In this document: piece after piece, positions 595 through 16,700 of the stretch
Numbering within the stretch: the first letter of the stretch is position 1
How the letters are laid out: the number at the start of each line of letters is the position of its first letter
Origin: Klebsormidium nitens
Lineage: Eukaryota > Plantae > Klebsormidiophyceae
Reading direction: 5' to 3'
NCBI GenBank assembly: GCA_000708835.1
Contig: DF237550.1
Coordinates: 1-52,760, forward strand
Length of the DNA: 52,760 bases
Position numbers and translations under genes: made by a program
Notes under the pieces: generated by a model
Told to the model about the DNA's origin: nothing
Database searches by the model: none
What the model saw: only the letters and a program-made list of their open reading frames with translations

Positions 595-1546
595 AACTGG
601 CATTTTGTGGACTGCTGTGATGGCACATAGGTATCTGAAGCGCTTCTGAGAACGTCGTGGACTAGATAAGTTGCTATTTGGTTGCCTTAAGAAGCACTCG
701 TAGTGTAGTACAATGTGTCAGGCAGAGATGGGCTCTGCCGCTTCTTTTCTGATACTCAAGGACGTAAGTCACTGGCATTGTGGTGCCCTTGCATCGATTT
801 TTGGCATAGCGAAAGGCGCGCAGCGTAATCGAGACTCTCTAAGAGTTCCAAAAGTAGCATAATTGTTGCGCTAGTTATGCCAAAATTCGTGCTGTTTTCA
901 TACTTATCACGTAACCATTTGCTCTTGCTGTCTTGAGCAGCCTCTAGAGGCATCAGGATGATACACCATATCTGAAGCTCTTCAAGAACGCAACTGAGGG
1001 ACTTGTTTGAAGGAGGTGGACGTGGTTTTAGGGGTTGTTTCTGTGACTCTTCATGAGTGCGTACGCGCGGGAGTTACGCACGGGAGTTGCATACGCAATG
1101 AAGGAGCGAATGCATTAGAAGTGGAGCATGCGAATGTTCATCGACAGAAACTAATATTTACTCTTTACTTTCCTCTTGACCTCGCAGGGGATTGAAAGCT
1201 GGTCCTTCAATTTTCTCATCATGACAAGGTGCCGGCCTCATGGCCGGTCCAAGTTTGATCAAAGGGTGAGCGTGTGGTGCGATCTGACACAATTGGTTGT
1301 TCTCTTATACACAATCTGGGGGCAGCAAGTTCCCTGTCATGACCCTAATGCATTGTGGGTCTGCATCTGACACGTGACTCAATAGCGACGGTAACTTAAT
1401 GCTTCACCGTTGCTTCTGCAGCTTGGAATGAGTTGCAAAGTATGGGGGATATCTCCTCTCTTTCATCTGTTGCCTATCCGATCTGAGCAACGGTGCTTCT
1501 TCTCATGCAGAAGCCAGGCAGGACCCCCTTGAGAAGCGCACTGCCA

Positions 1547-3256
1547 ATGGCTGAGCACACACCCGCTGCCTCGAGCCCCCCAGACCTTGACGCCGCTCTT
1601 CCCCTCCCAGACATTCAACGCCTGGTCATGAGCACGTTCAAGCAGGGGACTGTCAAGGGGGAGCGCCTCTTCCGCAGGAGCGTGGCAGTTGTGCGCGGGC
1701 TAGCTAGGAAAGCGTGCGGGTCAGCGGGCTACAGCTGGACAAAGGCCGCCCGGGACGGGGCCTCGCAGGTGGCCATGCGGGGCTTAGAGGGGCTCCTGAG
1801 TGCTTCAGAGTCGTTTCTGCGCGAGGGCTTCAACCATGTGGTTGCGGAAACTGCTGAAGCCTACCTGGAGGGGCTGAAGCACGAGGGCAATGTGCGGGGT
1901 AGGTTGCAGGGCCGCAAGCGCAGAACCTCGGGAGTGAAGCGGGGTGCGCAGCGCAGCTACCGCGAGCAGCCGACGGAGGGGCTAGGTTCCCAACTAGGTA
2001 AGAAGGGCTAGCTGTTCACTTTCTTCTGCAGTTGATCAGTCGGGCCAGGCGATGCCAGTATGTCGGGTTGTACTTTGTCGCAGCGCCTGCGTAGTGCAAA
2101 TTTCAGGCGGGGGGGAGCTTCTTCTTGTACCAAGATTGGTTCAATCTTGACTAACATAGACTGTACTGTATGTGGTAGACGCCAGTACCTACTTTTGGTC
2201 TCGAGGATTCCAGGATAGAGCTTCTCGTGTACCCAAATGCACCCTTCGTTTCTGGATTAGAACCTCTCCTTCCTTGGTACGCTGCCATCACCTGCAAGGT
2301 TTTTCAGTGTTCAGCATCAGGTCTCCTCCATGGTAGAGTTGCCTGCTTGAGTTACACATCGCAACTTAAGGTGCGATTCTAACTCCGTTCTTGGGACCCT
2401 TTTTCAGATCATTTAGGGCCACACAGCCTCAGCTGCCACGGGTGCGGCGCCGGTGCAGCGTGGGGTCTTCGAGGAAGCAGGGAGGGCGGTAGTATCAAAT
2501 ACTTTTGCGAAACGCATGCAACCTCCAGTGGCTGCTTTCGAGTCGACCCAGACCGTGCTGGTGAGAGCATTCGCGGTGCCTGCCTTAAAGTTGCGTCTGG
2601 GTTTCCTGCAACATTTCAGCTGCTCCCCTGCCGCACAGCAATGGGTCTTTAGAGTAGAAAGGCGAGAGTGACGCGCTCTGTATGCTTCTGCAGTCTGGGC
2701 AGCGGACCACGAACTGCGTCGCCTGAGAGCAAAAGCTAGGCGACTCGAGCAGGAGCTGCAAGATCTTGGAGGGGCCCCGAAAGGTGAGCGTGCGCTGCCG
2801 GTTGGGCTGGTCTAATCTGTTCGCTCTTGTTTAAAGCCGGGGAACAGTGAGCTCCTTTTCATGCCTTTGGTGCGTGGTGGGTCCTTCTTCACTGCACTGA
2901 TACGTGATGCGTTCTTCTTGGCAGATGCACCCAGCGCGCCACCCTTTGCAGCTTGGCAGGAGTCCGGAGGTATGACGGACTGGGTTTCCATGCCCAAGAG
3001 CCGGTCGCTTATAGGTAAGGCACTTCGATTGTGGCTCTGTGTCTGCATCACTTGTGGAGCAGTCGGGCTGAACATTCAAATGGTTGTGGAGCACTTGGGC
3101 CTTGACCTTCTCTTGACTTGTTCGGGGGTCTTCCTCGTCGGTTCCGGATGAGCCAACTGCGTCAGACCTTTAGCATCTGAATGTGGTGTCCTCATGTGCA
3201 GCGACGCTTCTCATGAGGGGTGGGGTGGAAACCAATCCGGGGCCTTCTCCACATGA
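1547..3256 (+). CDS. Putative spliced ORF1 (~270 aa): basic NLS-like stretch, C-x2-C-x20-C-x2-H zinc-finger-like motif and short coiled coil; function unknown
   Basis: Phase-consistent GT-AG exons 1547-1997, 2408-2560, 2694-2784, 2952-3014, 3202-3256 (TGA 3254-3256). Translation includes GRKRRTSGVKR, CHGCGAGAAWGLRGSREGGSIKYFCETH and ELRRLRAKARRLEQELQDL. It may extend upstream via exons near 1188-1265 and 1422-1439. No family recognised with certainty. Confidence 0.45.
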
Positions 3257-6200
3257 GGTGAGCCTAGACAAGGAGTCCCTGCAATTTAGGGCGGGGACTG
3301 GTTAGCGCTGGTTGTATTCAGGCATCATGGAGCAACTTTGTGTCCCTTGTCAATGTCCATGCTGCTAAAGAGCGGGCTACACATTGTTGTGCTGATCTCC
3401 AATGTCTCCCTACCACAGATTGCACGAGTCTGGCGGGAAGCTTATCCAAACGCCGACCCCACCCTGCTGGAGTATCTCTCACTTCACCAGTTCAAGTTGG
3501 CAGAGTGGAGAGCACTGCCTGCTCAAAGGCGCTCTATCATTCTGACCGGGCTGAAAGAGAAGTACAAAGAGCCATGGGCAGTGGGCTGGAGCATCTTCCT
3601 TAGAAGGGCAGCCGGTGAGCAGCTCCTCCTCTAGATGAGTAGGCTAGCTACGAGGCAAAGTGCTTGGAGATTAAATTTACAGGTTGTGGCCAATATGGAC
3701 ATGAGGGATTCGAGCACTGTAGTACTGTTCTTTAGCATATAGCGGCGGGAAAGCTTGGAGGAAATGGCATGGAAAACGGAATCCGCTCATTTTTGAGATT
3801 TTGTCGGCTTCCTTGCTATGCGATATAGTCGCTTCTTTATCAATCTTGCCGGACACACTGGTGCATGCTAGGCATGTGGTGTGTCCAAAAGAAGCAGAGA
3901 GCAGAAAGCATATTGGTGTGCAGCTGATGGCAGACACGCACCATTGTGGGCATTAAGAATCTGTCAGGTGCTTTTTATTTTGCACGCTTCCAAATGGTGA
4001 GGGTCTCCACAGTTGGATCCTGCCTTTGCTTGCTGCCTTAAGAGCTTATGCGCGCGATAGCCTGATCTGCTTCTTGGTCCGATGCAGCTTCTACCAGTTC
4101 CGATGTGGATATGGAGAATGCAGAGAGCTGGGTGGAAGCTCATCCGACTTTCCATCCACCCCTGCTGGAGTACCTGGCCAACCAGAAAGTCCAATTGGCG
4201 GATTGGAGAGCGCTCCCCGCTGAAGCTCAACTTGAGAGCCTGACCGAGTTGAAGGCCCACCACCCAGCATGGCTTATCGGCTGGGATCTCTCCCTGGAGG
4301 CTATTGGTAAGCAGTATTCTCTTCTAGATGAGAAGGCTAGCTACAAGGCAAGTGCTTGGAGATTATGGTTAGAGGTTGTGGTCAGTGCGGAGATGAGTGA
4401 TTCAAGCATTGTAGTACTGTTTATTTAGCCTGCAGCGGCGGGAAAGCTTGGAGGAGCTGGCATGAGAAACGAATCTGCTGATAGTGACTTTGTGTGGGCT
4501 TCCTTTCCGAGTGACATAGTCGCTTCTTTGTCAATCTTGCCGTGGACCATAGTGCATGCTAGGCATGGGGTGTTTCCCCAGAAGAAGCAGAGCAGAAAGC
4601 GGACTGATGTGCAGTTGCAGTTGTTGGCAGAGCAAGCACACTTTTTGCCCATTAGAATCTTCATTAGCTGTTACCCTTCTGCACTCTTCCAAAAGTGTCG
4701 GGGTCTCCACCGTTGGAATCCACTTTGCTCGCTGCCTCAGAGCTTATGCAGCGAGACCCTGATATGCTTATCCTTCTGCTGCAGTTGCTGTGAGGAAGGG
4801 TCAGGATGGAGAGGCGGGCCAACCTGAGGACATGGATATGGGGGATGCTGATGAGAATAACCAGAGTTGTGAGTTCTGCCGCTTATGTCGAGAATATTTA
4901 AACCAACATCGTGAAGCTAGGTTTGCCCGTTTCCTTGGCAACTGAGGTCCAACCAGCACTGGCACCTCTGCTGCTTGAGAGCTGATAAACTCGAATGTCG
5001 GACAACTACTCTCTGCTCTCTGCCTTACTATCTGGTGCATGATGGACAATCTACGGATAGGTTGAGCAACCCAGCAAGCATCTGCATCTCCAAGTCCTAA
5101 TTTGTATTGCGTTCCGCCATTGCCTAGTAGTGACCCTGCCCACTAGCGGCTTTCCTCTCAGGCAATGCATTTGTGACCAAGTCTGAGCACGTAGCCTTTG
5201 CGCAGATGCACGGAGCGACATCCTGGCGTTGCAGAACTTGGCAAACGTCTCAGATACGGGCCTCAAGGTATGTGATTTCTGCCTACCCTGGTCTTGCCGC
5301 ACTTGCACCGGAGCCGGAAGGGCCTCTTCTCTAATGCTTTGCTTGAGTCTTTTAACTACCAGTCCAAGCTTTTTGATTGCTTGCGTGGGGTCTTCCTGTG
5401 CCTCTTCTTCCCTCGAGCATGTCCTTTTCTTCATATGTGCGGATATGCGACTGGCGGACACTCACGCTTGGAGGAGTTTTCTCGTTGCGCGAAAGTTTAG
5501 CTCGCCTTTCATGCGGTGCAGGAACCAGCTAGCTCGTCTGCCCCGCATTTGGAGAAGAGCAGAGATGCTGATTGGTATGTCGTACAAAGCCAATGCGAAG
5601 CTCTGATTAACCGAGCTAGGGGTGCACTTGCAAAGCTGCAAATAGAGCCGCAGATTGCCTGCTTCCAGAGCCCCTCTGAGCTTCCGCATGCCGCAGCAAT
5701 CAACAAGAACAAGATTCCCCTGGCAAGGGGATTGCCCAGTTTCCTAGTGGACCGTCTGCCAAGCCCTGTCTTCAACAATGTGACGTGGACGCAAGCTGCG
5801 GAGCTTCTCGACGGGATGAAAGAGAGGCACACATTTCAGAACCTTTCCGTAACAAGCTTTATGGCTGCCTCTGGCTACGGGAAGACAAGGACTGCGCTAG
5901 AAATGGGCTGCCTGCGGCCAGGTGTCCTCTACTTCAGCTGCTGCGGCCCAGAAGAGGTCGGCTCGAGAGATTTGTGGGAAATGCTGGGCCGCCTCAAGGT
6001 CACGTGCAAGGAGGGCTCCAGGTTCTGGGAGAGCAACCACGAGCGGGTGCAAAAGCACGTGTACGCTATGCTGCTTTCGCGCCTGAAGCACCTCAGCGAG
6101 TGCCTCTCCTTAGGATGTGACCCCCAGCAGTGGCTGCGCTACCAGCTCGTGGTCTATCAGGGGCAGCAGGTAATGATGTGTTGTCTATTCCCACTCCTAG

Positions 6201-8343
6201 GCACGTTTCGTTAGTCTTTTGCCTGCTCCCCAACATCTCTTGTGATCCCAGCAGGACCCTGCGTGCGTTTGTTTTGGGCGTTGTCCATGCGGTGCTTCTT
6301 ACAATGGTACTACTCCAAAGATTGGAAGTGGATGCACGCGCTATTTTGCCTCAATCCGTCAAGTCGGACTGCTAAGTTCTTGCAGTGTCTCGTTCTTGCC
6401 TCCAATACCGTCTTCCTTGTTTGCACCAGGAGCTCCATTGAGCTGTTTCGTATCGTTCTGTCATCTACTGGCCAAGATTGGTGCTTAAACGTGGCTTTTC
6501 TGGAGAATGAAGAAGCACCCATCTTCCTTGGGCGGCTAGGGGTGCACCTCTGCTTGCTTTGTGCAGCTTACTAGCTTTGTGCTTACTAACGAGGATCACC
6601 ATCGTTGTGCAGGACACCTTTGCGGAGGCGTACAATGTGCTGCGGCATGCGTCACTCAAGGACCTCCAAGAGCTCGTCACCGCCGAACTAGAGGCTTGTC
6701 TGAGCACCTTGATGGCTGACGGGGTCGAGTTCCTGATTCTGGTGTTGGACGAGGCTCAGCTCTGGGCAGAAGAGCTCCCTGGCATGTTCTCGAATGGGGC
6801 CGTCAAAGGGCAGCAAGAGGGGCGGCCCTTGCTGTCAGCCTTCCTTGCTGTTATCGCCAGCGATCCTGTCCTCGTCAAGAACATCCACGTCGTGCTTTCG
6901 GGCACTGGGTTGTCATTGTCACAAAGCATGCTCGTAGCTTCAGCCTTAATGAAAGTGGGAAGCAAGCCGTTCCCTGTTGTCGACTTTGGAACTTTCAACG
7001 ATGCATCCGCACGCAAGTATCTGGGGGACTATGCGGGTCCGCAGGACATTCCAGAACACGACCTGCTTTTCCTTGTTGGGAGGAGACGGTTCGCAGCTAG
7101 GGTTGTGCTGGACTGGGCGCAGAGCGGACAGGAGAGCATTCTGACTTGTCTTAGATCGTTAGTCCGGCAGCACACAACAAAGGAAGGAAGGGAACTCTTC
7201 TTGGCGAACGAGCGCAGGGACGTGTACGAACGCCACTTCCTCTACGGCCGCCTTGGTGCTTTGTTGAAGCGAGGGGCAGAGGGAATGAAGCTGCTTGACC
7301 TACTGAAGCGGGTTGCCTTTGCCCACGCAAGGCTGGGGGGCCCCTGTTTGTTCCTGCACCACCAGGAGTTCGACCTGGTGGATCTTGGTTTTGTGAAACT
7401 GCACCACTCAGGGAAGCACCGCATTGTGGCCTCAATCGAGGAGCCCCTTGCGGTCAGGGCACTGTTCAACTTTTTGGAAACGGAGCTCAAATGGAGTGCC
7501 AAGGAACACGCGCTGACTCTGATGGCGCAGAGCCAACCCTTTCCAGCCATGCTGGGGCAGTGGTTCGAGGTGGTGGCTCCCGACCAGCTTCCCCAGCTCT
7601 TTCAAACGGAGGGGGCTCTAGCGGATGCGCCGCTCTTCAGCAACCTCAAAAGCGAGCTGCCGGAGTGCTTTCGGAGGGAGGGTGCAAGTTTGGCGCGAGT
7701 CCAATTGGCTCCCGATGGCAAATACAGCTTTAGCACAGTGGCTAAACCGACAGGGTTAGACGCCCCAGTGCGTCTAGCGACCAAGGGCAGGGGCGTGCTG
7801 GCGTGGCTGCGAGACCCCGGTGGCATCGTCTGGTTCTTTCCTGAGACGAGCGCCGGGCCAGACCTTCTCTTTTTCGTGGTTGTTGGGGGTGCCCTCTACC
7901 TTGTGGTCTGCCAGCTAAAGCTCCGGTGGAAGTTGGACAGCCTAGCCAGGGCCATCCAAACGGTCGACCCCAGGTATCTTTTTGAGGGGAAGGTAAACAA
8001 GGAGGAGTTGCGAGAAGTAGCACACGAGGCGCTTCGCGCAGAGAGGGGGGTGGACGGGGTTATCAGCCTTTTAATCGGATATCCTCTCAGAACCCGGATG
8101 AGAGAATTTGTTCCCAAGAAGTCTTCTGCTGAGGAGGAGGATAGAAAGAGGAAGAGCAAAGAGGAGGTGGATGACATGGTGGAGCCGTCTGTCCGAATTG
8201 TGATTGATGGAAAGCGAAAGACAGAACTTCTTCCAAAGGAGCTGAGAAAGTTTTTGGATGCGGCAAAAAATTACGGAGAACTCGAGGCAGAGGAGGACGA
8301 CTTAAAGGAGGCCGAGGAAGTGGAGGCAGAAGAAGGCAGGTGA
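2972..8343 (+). CDS. Crinkler (CRN/CR)-like protein, ~1010 aa: 2A-like N-terminal peptide, duplicated helical header, P-loop NTPase, C-terminal restriction-endonuclease-like domain
   Basis: Phase-consistent exons 2972-3014, 3202-3257, 3419-3614, 4088-4306, 4785-4868, 5206-5267, 5522-6169, 6613-8343 (3039 nt). Walker A MAASGYGKT (5861-5887), Walker B LILVLDEAQ, VVLSGTGLSL motif, and REase-like FFPETSAGPDLLFF...VCQLK...AIQTVDP. This NTPase+REase layout is typical of CR effectors. The 5' exons are less certain than the last two. Confidence 0.8.
3419..4868 (+). repeat. Tandem duplication of an exon+intron unit (~690-700 bp) encoding a ~65-aa helical repeat, plus the start of a third degenerate copy
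   Basis: Exons 3419-3614 and 4088-4306 encode similar peptides (WREAYPNADPTLLEYLSLHQFKLAEWRALPA vs WVEAHPTFHPPLLEYLANQKVQLADWRALPA). Introns 3615-4087 and 4307-4784 align along their length (e.g. ctagatgag..ggctagctac.aggcaa.gtgcttggagatta; gcggcgggaaagcttggagga). Confidence 0.9.
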
Positions 8344-9949: not shown

Positions 9950-11330
9950 AATGTTTCAATGTCGGATGCTGTCGGTCCAAGGAGCTGCAATCTTGATCCT
10001 CTGTCAACTGTACCAGTATCAAAGCAGTAAAGCCTGTCTCAACTCACTCGAAGCTGCCGCTAAAGCCCGCGAGTCTCACGTAATCTCTGTCAACCGTCTA
10101 GTAAGTGTGGGCGCCGCTCTACCTCAGTCGTCTATCAATCTCTGACCAGATCAAACGCAGTACTACAAGAACAACCGTTCATCTCACCTCAACAACACTT
10201 TATCAGCTCCAGGTCTGTGCTATTGGATAACGTCAGCGGACGCAGCCTTAATCCCTGGTCTAGCAACCTGCAACCAATTTAAGAAGAGTGTTGAAATGCA
10301 GAAGACGCATGGTGAGAATGACAGGCTAATCAGCCAGCGGTTCCTGGTCACTGAACCTGGATGGTGGCGGATGTGAAAAAGCCGCGTCTTCTAGACTGCG
10401 CACGAACTGAGGACGCCCATCTCGAAGCCCCTGCTTGCACGAAAGAGCGTATTCTGAACGTTTAACATCAGGCCTACTTTTTGAAACCGAAGGATGACGG
10501 AAAACGTTGAGCAGAGAGCCTCAAGTTTGATCACACGGAAAAGACTGCCTGCAGCTCTAGCACACGGCTAGTTCCGCCTGTCTACAAAAATGGAAAGAAG
10601 AAGGGGCCACACCGACAGCAGTACTCTGAAACAGTCATGACTGTTAACCTGCAAGGAGCAAACGCCGGCCAATGGCGGTCAATTCTTTAGAATGGGCAGG
10701 TTCTTTTCAGGACATTTTGGTCTGGAATCTGCATTGATCAGGCCGCCGTCAGGCATGCTGTAGGACTCTCGTAGATTTGGTCTTCCGGTCCAGTTTGCGG
10801 CTGCGCTTTATTGGCGTGGTGCAGAATAGACCTTGGCCTAAAATCAAGCAAGGTTGAGAAAAATCTAGAAGTATCATGAGCTGTCTCCTGCAACAATTGC
10901 CTTTGAAAGTTCAATGGGCAGGGCGAAACTAGCTTACTTTTCAAAGACACTCTCAGGCCGTCGAGGCCGTTGAAAAAAGGTCAATTACAGAAACGTCTTC
11001 AATAACAAAAGGAAGTCAATCCTAGTCAAACCAAGAGACGATTTGCAGAAGTCAAGGACGAAGGATCGCCCTTGGGCACTAGCTAACAGGATCGGAACGT
11101 AACGACCGAAACACGCTTGAAACATTGTACTCGTACACCTTTGAGCGCAAAATTTTGGCGAATCATGATGGATATCAAACACTTCAATCGAAAAACTCCC
11201 GGTCTCGTTTGACTGGGACAGAGTCAAAGGGGCTGCCAATGTCTTCAAAAGAAAACTTTGAAGACGAAGAAGAAGAGCCCGACCACGTAAACGACAAGGC
11301 AGGAACCAGTTTCGCTGCAAGGCCGCAGGC
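9950..11330 (-). pseudogene. Possible degenerate reverse-transcriptase remnant (Penelope-like element)
   Basis: Minus-strand fragments fall in PLE-RT order: SFSIEVFDIHHD (~11200, motif-A-like), NTLFRASRGFEMGVLSS (~10460-10410, GxxMG motif), GLRLRPLTLSNSTDLEL (~10250-10195), RRLTEIT*DSRALAAASSELRQALL (~10110-10030, thumb-like). Stops and frameshifts are present and there is no clean YxDD. Confidence 0.3.
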
Positions 11331-14300
11331 AACCATCCGGTTGAAGACTGAGTAACGAGTTTCTGCGACTGACCAGATACTTAGAGCAACAGGTAAGACA
11401 GAAGACCCTCAGAGCCGGCGACGACATGCCGTGTGTCCAACCACCTTCCAAGTAGACGACAGCAAAACTTGGATGAGCCCGCACAAACCGCACCTGAGCT
11501 TCGTCATAGCCTGAACACCAGGATTGAGAACTGGCGCAGGCGATGGAGTAGGAAACTCAAACCTTTCTGAACGGACACCGGCCGTATCAATCGGCAAAAC
11601 GCTGGAGCAGTAGCAGCAACCGGCATGTCAGTGGAAGACTAACACATCAATCATTTAGGGCACCGCAAACGCCGGCAGCACATGTAGGTGCGAAAACCAG
11701 CGACTACTAATTGTCTGTGCAGAAGAGTCATTCCCATGATCGTTACAAACAGACGGCTCAGGTACCGGTCATTTCGGACTCAGAAGTCACTCTTGGGGGA
11801 AAGAAAGCCAGGTACACGCAATTCACCCAAAATTGTGATCCAACGACATGAACGAGTGACGTGACCGAAGGTACTCAGCGCAACGTAATCAAGCCATTTA
11901 CCAAGCAGGCACAGCCAAGTTGCTCGACTTCGAACACGAGTACTCACCGCCAGTACTGGGAAAGCGGAAACCTGCTCAATCCAAGATACACATAGACGAG
12001 ACGCGCTTGCTACAGGAGTCACTTGTAAACAGCAATCGAAGGCGGCGGAAGTGCAAGGGTTTAGATATACAAAATCATGCACCAAACAGGGCCCACGTGG
12101 GATAACCGGAATACTGCCCTAGCAACCCGTGTTGCTGCGGTCGAAAACAAGACTGAAGCAACATCAGAGGACAAATAGTGAGCGATCATGACAGGAGCAA
12201 TCCAGGGCAGAGCTGACCAAAGGAACCTTCTGCCAAGTGTCGATAGACATGCCCGGTCAATCAAGCACTGTCTGCGGTTGTTCTTTGAGACTAGCTAGAT
12301 CGCAAACCAGCTCAGACAAGGCTCCTTTTCTACCGTCCAAACACGGCGACAATACAGCAGGGGACGCCAATGACAACCACACACCGTAACAACGATGCAT
12401 TCGCTCAAGAGTCCGAAAACAAACTAAAAGGGCTGAAAGCTGATGGAAAATGCCATGGGTCGGGGAACGACCAAGAAGCGAGTCGCAGCCCAGCTAGCCT
12501 AGAGTTGTGAAGGGCAGCAAAACGAGTCTTTGCACTCGAAAAAAGGATGGATAACAAGGGACAAGGTTAGTAAAGAAGAACTCTTGTGAACGGGCCAGAG
12601 GAACCGGTCCAAGCCAGCGTAAGCAAAAGCGAAAAGAGCAGGCGATGAAGGATGTCCGCAGCGGGACGAAGAATGGAAAGTGTGCTAGCTTGGTAAAACG
12701 CCGGAGATGAGCGAGGGATAGAAAAAGGTGTCTCGTATCATTACGAGGCTGTCGACCGAGGGACAAAGAGACTCGCGGCGAACAGTGGGGTTTGCTAGCT
12801 CATGAATAATTACGAAAAAAAAGCGACAATTTGGCAAAACAAAACAGATCTGAAGCCGTAAGGACCACCGCGCAAGGAGAAAACTCTGGTCAATTCCACA
12901 GGGAACGTGTCTCGGGAATCATCCTGCAAAAGTGGCCAGATGCGAGTGTTGGCCAGAAGACCTCAACGAGCAAGTTCATATTCAAGCGAGCCACTTTGCG
13001 GCTTTCAAGAAAGGAAAGCGCCACGTCGGAGGAACTCGCGTGGCGCGCCGGACGAAGGTTGCATTTGACCGGAATCAAAGCGAGCGGAATGGAGGATGGA
13101 AGCGAGCATGGAATGGATATCGACCAAGACGCGGGCCGCGCGTGTGGCTGCAGCTGGAACGCAGACGGCAGCGGAGCGAATGGTCGCAGGAAGAAGAGTA
13201 GGATTGTCCCAACGTGGATAGCGGCAGGGAAGAAAGAAAGCCACTTGGCCGGAACACCGAAAAACCGCAAAAGTAGTATCAAGCCGATCAGGCAGTGCAG
13301 ACAACAAGTGCAGTCAACAAGTACCGCAACAGAGCGAGAGAGGAATTGACAAAGAACAAGAAAGTGCACGAAAGTGAATAAGGCTTCCTATTTAGACTAC
13401 TATCATTGGTGCTATCTTTGAGGGAAGCGTGCCAAACAGCAAGGTTTGCGAGCTCATTCTAGGACTGGAAATAATCACTGCGATTGATAGGCAGGAAACG
13501 CTCGGCCGAAAGCTCCGGCAGACCTTAACAAGGCGGGCGCTCACAATACGGCGTTTGTAAACACACGGAGGAATAGTCAAACTGCGTGCTGTTGCTGAGT
13601 TGCTGAAAATTAACTGAACCAGATGCATAATCGGCGAAAGAAGTTCCACATAATGTTGGGTATAAGAAGGACCTGGATACGACCGGCAGACATTATCTTT
13701 TTGGCGGGATTGACGGTAGTACCAACGCTTCCGCCCGATGTAAACCTGGGAAGGAAGGTTCAGAAGTCGGCACCAGATAAGCGCTAAAGTTCGTCACAGG
13801 AACACCCGGACTAGCAGTTGGCAATAAGAAAGGAGTAAAACCGACTCTCGATTTCAGTGGAGCCTTGCAGATTGGTTGTGAGAACCGATTAGCAACATGC
13901 ATCCATGGACAAAAGCAATCCTGGACAGGCTTCGTCGCTTCGCGACATGCCAGCAATGGGTGGCGCAGAAGACAACCACCGACTTCCTTTTTCTGATCAA
14001 CATGAATTTCACGACCTATTCTTTCCAAAAGGATCACCCAAGTAGCGGCCAACGAATACACGCCACCTGTAGTATCCAACCATACACGAAAGTGGAAGGA
14101 GGCAGGATTGCACGTGTCAATACACCCTTTAGGAGGATACCCGCTACACGTCCGGGTTGATGCCCTCAGACGAACAAGACCGAATGCAGAGACTAAAAGG
14201 GAGACCGGCTCTTAGCTTAACTGGAACGGTCGGCGGCTGACCGAAGGACCTGTTGCCGAAATGTCAACGCACAACTCCAGATGATTTGAAAACGTCCATT

Positions 14301-16700
14301 CGCAAATCAGCTCAATTGACTCGAAGGAGGTTCCTATCCTGTTTTCTGAGCTATGCTCAGGCAGAAACGTGGGTTACAAGGCGGGTTAACGGCAAAGAAA
14401 AAGGACGAATTCCGGGCGGCCCAGGCAGAATGCTAGGAATCTGAAAGAGCTTCGACAAGCGGAACATCCCGGCAGGTGAAGCACGGCACGAGCGGAGCGG
14501 AGCTGAAAGTGACGGTAGATGGGGCTGGTGATGGAGACGCCAGAGTGTACACACGCAGAAGGGGCTGGAGATGACGGCTTTGATCAAATCATAAGAGACA
14601 CAGAAATATCGGGACCAGAAAGAGCGGGCCACGAGATGTATGTAGAAGGAAGTGGAGCTAATCGACGATGGAGGGGCGGTTTTGAAGGACGGCGCGCCAG
14701 CCGAAATCTGCATCAAGCATACTACCGGCAATGAAAACGGGCAAAAGGAAAGATGGAAAGAGGAAGAGCACGAAGTGAACATACGACTAGGACGCTAATC
14801 CCCGCGCCCGAAGCGCTGCAGCTAACCAGTGACTCAAAGGCAAACATGCATACGGAATGGAAAGAACAAGCGGAAGGGAAGATGGAAGAGGAGGACAGGG
14901 GGTAGAGATACGATCAGGACGCGAGTTGCGCGCTCGCTCGCAAAGCGCCAGCTGACCCCGGACCGAAGAACATTACATCAAAGGGTTGGACTCGAGGGAC
15001 AACGGCAAAACGACTTACCGACTGGCCGAAGCACCAAAGTCAGCGGAAACGGAGACGAAAAGAGCAGGCGGTGGAGAATGACAGCAACAGAAAGCGGGGA
15101 CAAGCAGCAGAAACACAAAGCGGGGACAAGTGGGGACGAGTGGCCGCAAGGACATGAAAGAAGCGAGGGAGCCAAAAACGAGTCCTGGATTCAGATTGAA
15201 GGCTGCAGACAATGGAATTACTCCTTCGAGGTCGAGCGACGAAAACACATGCCGCGATCAAGCCAGACTGGGACGCTCGTCCTAAAGTATAAACGAAGGT
15301 CCTGAACAATGAAAAGATTGGAAAGTTCAATCGAAAGACTGACCGCGGAAGGAGCCAATGATATCAGGGAGAACCGCAGGCGCAAAAGAAATCAGCCCTC
15401 GAACGAAGCAGAGAGGAGAGACAACATAAACTAGAATTCAGGGTCAAGCAGCATGAAGTCAGCTGCTTTCAGGATGATGCAGCGGCGCGATGGAGGGCTC
15501 TCTCACAAGCATTGGGGCGAATCCGACTAAAGGGCGAAGGGTCACGTGAAACCTTTGGTCTACTGCATGTACGGTCCGTCCGTCTGCAACCTTAATACGT
15601 TGCTACAAGACCGTCGTTTTTGTGACGCAATACCGTCGATGAAGCTTCTGCGAAAGGCAATAGGATTCGGACGGAGAGGACAACGGGGAGTTCCGGTGTG
15701 GATCTTCACGAGACAAAGGAACTTCGCAGACCAGGCGATGACCAAAAGGAAGTCTTGCGGAGCTTGATGTCGTAGGCGGAGCAGCACTCGAAGATGTCCG
15801 GTCTCTGAGAGGTCTGGATTCCATGGTTGGAAACCCAAGAAGGTGGTGAGCGGAGGACGCGCGAGAACTTAAAAATTGAGCCAAGGAGGAGAGTCTTGAT
15901 CGGTCCAGCGACTATTTGAGGAGCTCCGGCAGATCCTGACAGAAAAGAGCAATGGAGTCCGCAACCAGAAGGGACGAGTTACTCGAGAGCAGGATACGTG
16001 CGTCTGCGTGCTTTCCTGCTAAAAGTAGTCCTGAAAAGGATACAATCCGACTTCATGTGGGGGGGAACACGACAAGCAATTCGAACAAGGAAGGAGATCA
16101 AATTCCTTGGGTCAGACTGGATGGCATCAGCGCCTCCGTGCCTCGAAACTTCAAGCATTCTTTCGTTTCCATTCAGCGAAGCCGCTTCGCGGTGCCTTTC
16201 AACCGTCGTAAAAGTTTGTCCCGGGACGGTGAACTTTGGCACTTCGCGCCGGCCATCAACCAGGCGACCTCTGAAAGGATTTGGCAGCTTCGTCAACGGG
16301 TTGCAAGAATCGGCGTGATTCAGTAAGTTGCTTCTCCTCGTTGCTTTATAATTATCTGATTCATTGCGTTGACGTCGGGTTGGCAGCGCCGATTTGACGA
16401 CTTACGGCGAAGTTGGATCGGGTGAGCTTGGCCGTTCAGGACGAGGTGGCTTCAACAGAAACCCGCGGAGCCCGCCGCAGCAGGGTATCAGCCTAGAGTA
16501 CAGTGGACGAAGCACCGTTCAGGACAAAGCCCGGAAGGACTTGAGGTGGCTCCGCTCGTTGGTCATTCATGGTGAGAACCGATCTTTGTGAAGCCCTTCA
16601 AGTGCAGTGGTTTTCAGACAGCGTGCGCGTGCGGGGCTCGCGCTTGCGCCGGGCGAGAACTCGGTCCAAGGAACCAGGTGAGGCTCTTGGACGTGTAGAC
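11331..16700. mobile_element. Gene-free, purine-skewed block, probably decayed transposable element(s)
   Basis: No spliceable gene model or recognisable ORF over ~5.4 kb; the + strand is visibly A/G-rich; flanked by the RT-like remnant and by motif arrays. Confidence 0.25.

Follow-up and report, generated by a model that had tools for sequence, protein, structure and literature searches.

The 2A-like peptides of eukaryotes are a known kind that has recently been much expanded. Here, we analyzed a 2A (StopGo) peptide in KFL_006010010, a nuclear gene of Klebsormidium nitens, a close algal relative of land plants. The gene lies on the forward strand of contig DF237550.1, and the window referred to throughout is this whole scaffold of 52,760 nt. 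The gene is expressed and intron-bearing, and its 2A is conserved in paralogs, standing between a conserved upstream segment (the leader) and enzyme modules that are swapped between genes (the payloads). On balance, we favor the reading that this internal StopGo site works and that leader and payload are made as separate proteins from a single mRNA.

The closest described elements are the viral StopGo peptides with the core G(V/I)ExNPGP, in particular those with the upstream context called motif 5 (PMC12846837; PMC13405545). They have in common with the K. nitens site the core GVETNPGP, a Leu-Leu pair four to five residues upstream, (A/G/S)G at position 12 (p12), a position between two modules of one open reading frame (ORF), and a Pro that is the first residue of the downstream product. 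Unlike them, the K. nitens 2A is found in an intron-containing streptophyte gene with no RNA-virus context, its peptide is split by a spliceosomal intron, and it is known here from sequence.

The non-viral setting is shared with other eukaryotic 2As, including those of retrotransposons without long terminal repeats (non-LTR; Odon 2013, PMC3708506; Rao 2025, PMC12338488; PMC13405545). The layout of a basic protein with a coiled coil and a zinc element, then a 2A, then an enzyme resembles the retrotransposon arrangement ORF1p-2A-ORF2p. However, the catalogued 2As of eukaryotes are mostly found close to the N-terminus, whereas this one follows a conserved leader of 300 residues, and its payloads are nucleoside triphosphatase (NTPase)-nucleases and a helicase instead of the APE-RT of non-LTR retrotransposons. 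The 2A of sea-urchin NLR-like proteins likewise precedes a STAND-type NTPase (Roulston 2016, PMC4981915), but it is N-terminal and doubles as a signal peptide. Since the K. nitens 2A is internal, the sea-urchin mechanism is inapplicable to it.

The payload itself is comparable to Crinkler effectors with an NTPase, a helix-turn-helix region and a restriction endonuclease (REase) C-terminus, as far as these are described in PMC5289972 (reporting Zhang et al. 2016). Within that description, the common features are the P-loop NTPase, a helical/winged-helix region and a PD...QxK motif; the K. nitens protein differs in having two copies of a 65-residue helical domain instead of the header family PF20147. 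Nothing in the literature searched links Klebsormidium or Crinkler proteins to a 2A, and Klebsormidium is not named in the main text of PMC13405545, PMC12338488, PMC12846837 or the Baral preprint. For this literature, a remark in the first-pass annotation of the window, that no 2A-Crinkler pairing had been described, holds. Since UniProt includes the proteins of K. nitens, published supplementary tables may already list these peptides.

An expressed, spliced gene with an internal 2A peptide

RNA contigs from four public runs, each from a different study, were aligned with splicing to window positions 1400-7399. The joints 3014/3202 and 3257/3419, with GT..AG ends, were seen in spliced contigs of all four runs, and nine further GT..AG introns were supported in the same interval. 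The contigs come from RNA; they show the gene to be expressed and the splicing proposed by the first-pass annotation to be correct. That annotation had placed an ATG at 2972, an intron at 3015-3201, an exon at 3202-3257 and the next exon at 3419, and had named the two joints as those to be checked in RNA; both the letters and the RNA agree with it. Its central observation, a 2A-like peptide split by an intron upstream of an NTPase-nuclease module, stands as well, and Crinkler headers are found in distant relatives of the module.

Around the split, the donor context is CTT ATA G followed by gtaagg, and gtgcag followed by CG forms the acceptor. The spliced reading at the site is ...SRSLIATLLMRGGVETNPG, then P. 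The 56-nt exon encodes TLLMRGGVETNPGPSPHE, with GGVETNPGP at 3219-3245. The octapeptide GVETNPGP has the form (D/G/C/N)(V/I)ExNPGP, and the residues before it, ATLLMRG-G in the window and ATLLLRS-G in a paralogous copy on the genomic Logan contig L003, were compared by eye with the published description of motif 5, with which LLMRG-G and LLLRS-G agree. The 2A is in frame within one ORF of a eukaryotic mRNA, between leader residues 1-325 and payload residues 326-1309. We predict the skip site between the Gly codon at 3240-3242 and the Pro codon at 3243-3245. In the AlphaFold2 model, the SRSLIATLL portion of the peptide is predicted to be helical, at low confidence.

Across the RNA-defined exons (Table 1), a single frame stays open, beginning with the ATG at 1221 and closing with the stop codon at 8341-8343. 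The public model (P0067, 1309 aa) includes every RNA-supported exon and has NPG/P at residues 323-326. One RNA contig covers 1510-4305, from the leader through the 2A exon, and its unaligned 5' end falls in exon E0. With the frame open upstream and an RNA contig reaching 1510, the Met at 2972 is internal to the protein. The candidate start codons are at 728, 1221 or 1547, and RNA ends that extend unaligned for up to 255 nt on the 5' side of 1510 are compatible with additional 5' exons. The annotated N-terminus, MGSAAS (728-745), is not conserved in the paralog models. We take it to fit the usual N-myristoylation pattern (Gly2, Ser6).

Taken together, these features suggest the following sequence of events, which we infer for the site. 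KFL_006010010 would be translated as one spliced ORF of about 1300 codons. Once ...SRSLIATLLMRGGVETNPG has been made, the nascent chain in the exit tunnel would block the peptide bond to the next Pro; the upstream chain would be released and the ribosome would go on translating. The first product would be the 325-aa basic leader, in which a four-helix bundle is followed by a CxxC...CxxH element and a coiled coil. The other would be the 984-aa payload: after its initial Pro come two helical repeats, then a STAND-like P-loop NTPase and finally a PD...QxK nuclease-type domain.

A conserved leader before exchangeable payloads

With a paralog leader as query, four more K. nitens proteins were found: P0066 (KFL_002470030, 1486 aa), P0014 (KFL_000380150, 904 aa), P0069 (KFL_009660020, 1165 aa) and P0068 (KFL_002680140, 875 aa). 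The copy on L003 is a further one. The 2A regions read SRSLIATLLLRSGVERNPGP in L003, SRSLIATLLLRGGVESNPGP at the P0066 locus (L004), SRSLI/AKLLAIGCVESNPGP at the P0069 locus (L005), SRSLIATLLKIGCVECNPGL at the P0014 locus (L006), and TLLFIGGVEKNRGP at the P0068 locus (L007), where the copy is decayed and unannotated. Five loci (the window, L003, L004, L005 and L006) share the 56-nt exon and its phase-1 acceptor. The intron that splits the 2A is 81% identical to that of L003; its position is common to L003, L004 and L005, and its acceptor is also found in L006.

Across the five loci, VExNPG is unchanged, with synonymous differences at the codons of V, N, P, G and P, whereas the residues at p9-p12, p15 and p20-22 vary. 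This pattern points to selection on the peptide and not on the nucleotides. The p12 residue in the family is G or C only, which are the two most over-represented natural alternatives to Asp at this position (PMC12846837). The core ends in NPGP in four of the five loci and in NPGL in the fifth (KFL_000380150); a sixth locus (KFL_002680140) has NRGP.

The modules downstream of the 2A are of several types: a CR-type NTPase-nuclease in the window and P0014, another P-loop NTPase in P0066, a third P-loop module in L003 and a Herpes_ori_bp-like (UL9-like) helicase in P0069. As the leader is conserved and the payloads differ, the 2A marks the joint between them, and it sits exactly at the border of the two. 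The reuse of the leader and 2A as a cassette before other payloads suggests that the 2A would act as a modular joint, through which the leader is co-expressed with a variable enzyme. More tentatively, and with less confidence than we place in the site of KFL_006010010 itself, we propose that an intron-split StopGo without Asp (G or C at p12) is a standard joint in this nuclear gene family. It would release the leader from interchangeable payloads as an operon-like two-protein module, possibly of a DNA mobile element or a conflict system, and would be among very few StopGo uses in spliced genes of the plant lineage. If skipping at the K. nitens site is confirmed, it would offer a natural system in which to ask why the leader and the payload have to be separate yet equimolar in the cell. 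It would also provide a 2A peptide with Gly or Cys at p12 that is adapted to the plant lineage, and hints at the assembly and control of modular NTPase-nuclease (Crinkler-type) genes.

Several side observations concern the paralogs. KFL_000380150 also has two helical repeats, the second preceded by a degenerate 2A copy, GGIEFSSGPGP. Its 904-aa model (L006, DF236987.1, 6484-8037) looks truncated, with similarity to the last exon of the window gene running past the annotated end into the next gene, and its 2A exon has no GT donor and reads through. The KFL_009660020 model skips an exon at L005 2690-2779, which ends PKSRSLI/G then gt and is homologous to window 2925-3014; the real 2A peptide of this gene is probably SRSLIAKLLAIGCVESNPGP. 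The gene adjoining KFL_002680140 (L007 17480-18772, DF237217.1) has Prim-Pol and D5_N domains, and L003 has an ORF (10784-11968) with 36-39% identity to portions of KFL_009660020, the gene with the helicase-type payload. Such associations hint that the leader family and replication genes travel together, which would be in keeping with a mobile or virus-like element. Searches of JGI metagenomes and IMG/VR neither support nor oppose a viral origin of the leader.

Activity of the core and alternative readings

The most direct concern about the site is the Gly in place of the canonical Asp at p12, which led the first-pass annotation to warn that skipping might be weak or absent. In RNA-virus ORFs, G(V/I)ExNPGP is found 1,207 times, against 908 for the Asp form, and p12 = C comes next with 85 cases (Li 2026, PMC12846837). 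Natural sequences with p12 = C gave >95% activity when tested in the viral context, and p12 = G is a prevalent natural core among active StopGo elements, tied to particular upstream motifs that include the L-rich motif 5 ending (A/G/S)G at p12 (PMC12846837). Two 2026 preprints, one of them PMC13405545, take GxExNPGP as an accepted non-canonical core, and one of the two reports a natural G-variant peptide with 97% activity. StopGo is also functional in wheat-germ extract and in plants. The worry about weak skipping is thus largely answered by these natural cores with G or C, but activity would still depend on the context.

The best-surviving alternative, which we regard as unlikely but serious, is that the site is an inactive or weak relic of an ancestral 2A that was once active. 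The gene would then make mainly a 145-kDa fusion protein, with SRSLIATLL...VExNPG persisting through recent duplications or as a structural linker. Several observations lend weight to this alternative or otherwise count against a working site. Substitutions of D12 in F2A and P2A were never above 0.6 activity, D12A abolishes it, and chimeric upstream contexts are often inactive; the poor tolerance of F2A and P2A implies that activity with Gly depends on the upstream context. The motif is decayed in two of the six related loci (NPGL and NRGP), and therefore the site is not indispensable everywhere. Between the window and L003, the leader has a ratio of nonsynonymous to synonymous substitution (dN/dS) of about 0.42, a moderate constraint, and the introns are 72-84% identical, a shallow divergence which means that part of the conservation reflects recent duplication. 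No leader relative was found outside Klebsormidium in the protein and metagenome searches given below. The closest payload relative from another organism (L001/L002, metagenomic, 70% identity) has neither a 2A nor a leader within 10 kb upstream, so the payload also exists without the cassette. Finally, the two separate products are themselves a prediction.

Against a relic, VExNPG is retained, through synonymous codon changes, in copies whose identity over the whole protein is as low as 38-60% (44-75% in leader exon E1, and 44-73% there for the copies other than the window-L003 pair), p12 varies only between two residues that both occur in functional natural cores, and the site is placed exactly at the leader/payload border. 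These points lead us to prefer a working, context-dependent StopGo site over a relic.

A second alternative is much less probable. The first-pass annotation had placed the 2A at the N-terminus, with translation starting at Met 2972, and had suggested that the peptide may serve as a signal sequence and skipping element that releases the NTPase-nuclease or divides it between secretion and the cytosol or nucleus. An ATG is indeed present at 2972, and N-terminal 2A signal sequences exist in sea-urchin NLR-type proteins. However, about 300 leader residues, conserved in paralogs, precede the 2A in the same open frame. Every contig over 2972 continues upstream across 2783/2925 or into intron 3, including a low-depth, intron-retaining contig piece that spans 2788-2938. 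No molecule starts are reported near 2972, though contigs cannot show starts. The proposed signal-peptide or dual-targeting role requires an N-terminal 2A, and it falls with that position.

That the core is a chance NPGP-containing string in a coding exon is the least credible reading: bare NPGP is common (about 0.6 per window in simulations), but the full core (D/G/C/N)(V/I)ExNPGP is expected by composition only 0.0003 times per window, or about 0.6 times in six frames of a genome that we take to be 104 Mb, and 0.002 times per genome when LL and p11 are also required, whereas homologous cores stand intact in this exon at four loci. There is only one [VI]ExNPGP match in the window. A second NPGP, on the minus strand at 547-558, is meaningless and comes from a short tandem repeat (GTTGGCCCGTTTCAG-like) at 541-600.

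Modules of the leader and the payload

The leader (residues 1-325) is a basic protein of about 35 kDa with an isoelectric point of 10 and a disordered N-terminus. It continues through the elements listed in Table 1, with a linker between the coiled-coil helix and the 2A peptide. The C, C, C and H columns of the CxxC...CxxH element are invariant in five paralogs, and confidence in its fold is low. By analogy with ORF1p-2A-ORF2p retrotransposons, our guess is that the leader might be a nucleic-acid-binding protein, a regulator or a partner of the payload.

Table 1. Features of KFL_006010010 and its 2A peptide in the window; exons E0 to E11 are those set by RNA
Feature	Coordinates	Strand	Basis
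First coding exon of the public model, MGSAASFLILKD	728..763	+	N-terminus of P0067 maps here
Leader exon E0, in-frame ATG at 1221	1188..1265	+	Unaligned RNA end is an exact match to 1235-1264; phase-0 junction to 1511
Leader exon E1, basic region and predicted four-helix bundle (P0067 residues 66-161)	1511..1997	+	RNA contigs; AlphaFold2 local confidence score (pLDDT) ~80-90; conserved in paralogs
Leader exon E2, CxxC (2434-2445) ... CxxH (2506-2517), candidate zinc-ribbon element	2408..2560	+	Joints 1997/2408, 2560/2694
Leader exon E3, coiled-coil helix (248-275 in model)	2694..2783	+	RNA joints
Leader exon E4, ends in first 2A half (SRSLI 2999-3013 and first base of the Ala codon); internal Met 2972	2925..3014	+	Joints 2783/2925, 3014/3202; translation
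Phase-1 intron interrupting the 2A peptide	3015..3201	+	GT..AG joint in four runs
Exon E5, 56 nt, TLLMRGGVETNPG then PSPHE; phase-0 donor at 3257	3202..3257	+	RNA joints; translation; homologous exon in four other loci
Core octapeptide GVETNPGP	3222..3245	+	Fits expanded core of Li 2026
Payload exon E6, helical repeat 1 ("header" of the first-pass annotation)	3419..3614	+	Joints; helices 328-378 in model; no Pfam match
Payload exon E7, helical repeat 2, tandem duplicate of E6 and intron	4088..4306	+	Joints; repeat comparison
Linker exons E8 (4785-4868) and E9 (5206-5267) with the intron between	4785..5267	+	Joints 4306/4785, 4868/5206, 5267/5522
Payload exon E10, first part of P-loop NTPase, Walker A SGYGKTRT (5870-5893)	5522..6169	+	RNA; motif; STAND/ORC-type fold matches
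Payload exon E11, Walker B LVLDEAQ (6739-6759), helical/winged-helix region, GPD (7855-7875) ... QLK (7906-7920), acidic tail, stop	6613..8343	+	Joint 6169/6613

Searches with the leader gave little. P0067, P0066, P0068 and the individual exons matched no Pfam family, with weak AAA_22/ATPase_2 hints at most; Foldseek on the leader model returned generic four-helix bundles only (E > 0.5); and ESM Atlas gave no usable match. Against 5.8 billion proteins, E1 found one Logan ORF only and E2 no candidate, in searches whose length window is blind to long spliced models. Leader relatives were not found in JGI metagenomes (two scans) or in IMG/VR.

The payload (residues 326-1309, 984 aa, about 110 kDa) begins PSPHEIAR. 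Its two helical repeats arose within a tandem duplication of exon and intron at 3419-4784, with a period of about 692 nt, a 65-residue helical domain and intron copies that are 80-84% identical. An acidic linker connects the repeats to the P-loop NTPase. The AlphaFold2 model has a mean pLDDT of 80.5, and Foldseek matches it to STAND/ORC-Cdc6 ATPases (2qen, 8dgc, 8bob; E ~1e-4), with fold matches that include PAB2304, Avs3, MalT, Apaf-1 and NLRs. The D-E-x-Q and G-P-D...Q columns are nearly invariant in 25 homologs. The C-terminal domain, with its nearly invariant G-P-D...Q-x-K, is beta-rich in the model, and the motif suggests an REase fold. A PDB sequence search with the payload profile gave nothing meaningful, and PADLOC found nothing.

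Exons E6 and E7 had been read in the first-pass annotation as a "Crinkler header." They match no Pfam family, and PF20147 was not found by Pfam in them or in P0067 as a whole. Three remote payload homologs (P0026, P0047 and P0049) do bear PF20147, which supports the description of the payload as a Crinkler-type NTPase-nuclease.

Two minor observations concern the transcripts and the surroundings of the gene. A second contig in runs X1 and X7 departs from the window at 6108 (C>T) and 6112 (A>G), within 6108-6169, and joins 6152 to 6609 with 16 other letters between; it may reflect allelic variation, a transcribed paralog or the use of another donor. Over about 6 kb 3' of the gene (window 10000-16000), the plus strand has a strong AT skew of up to +0.34.

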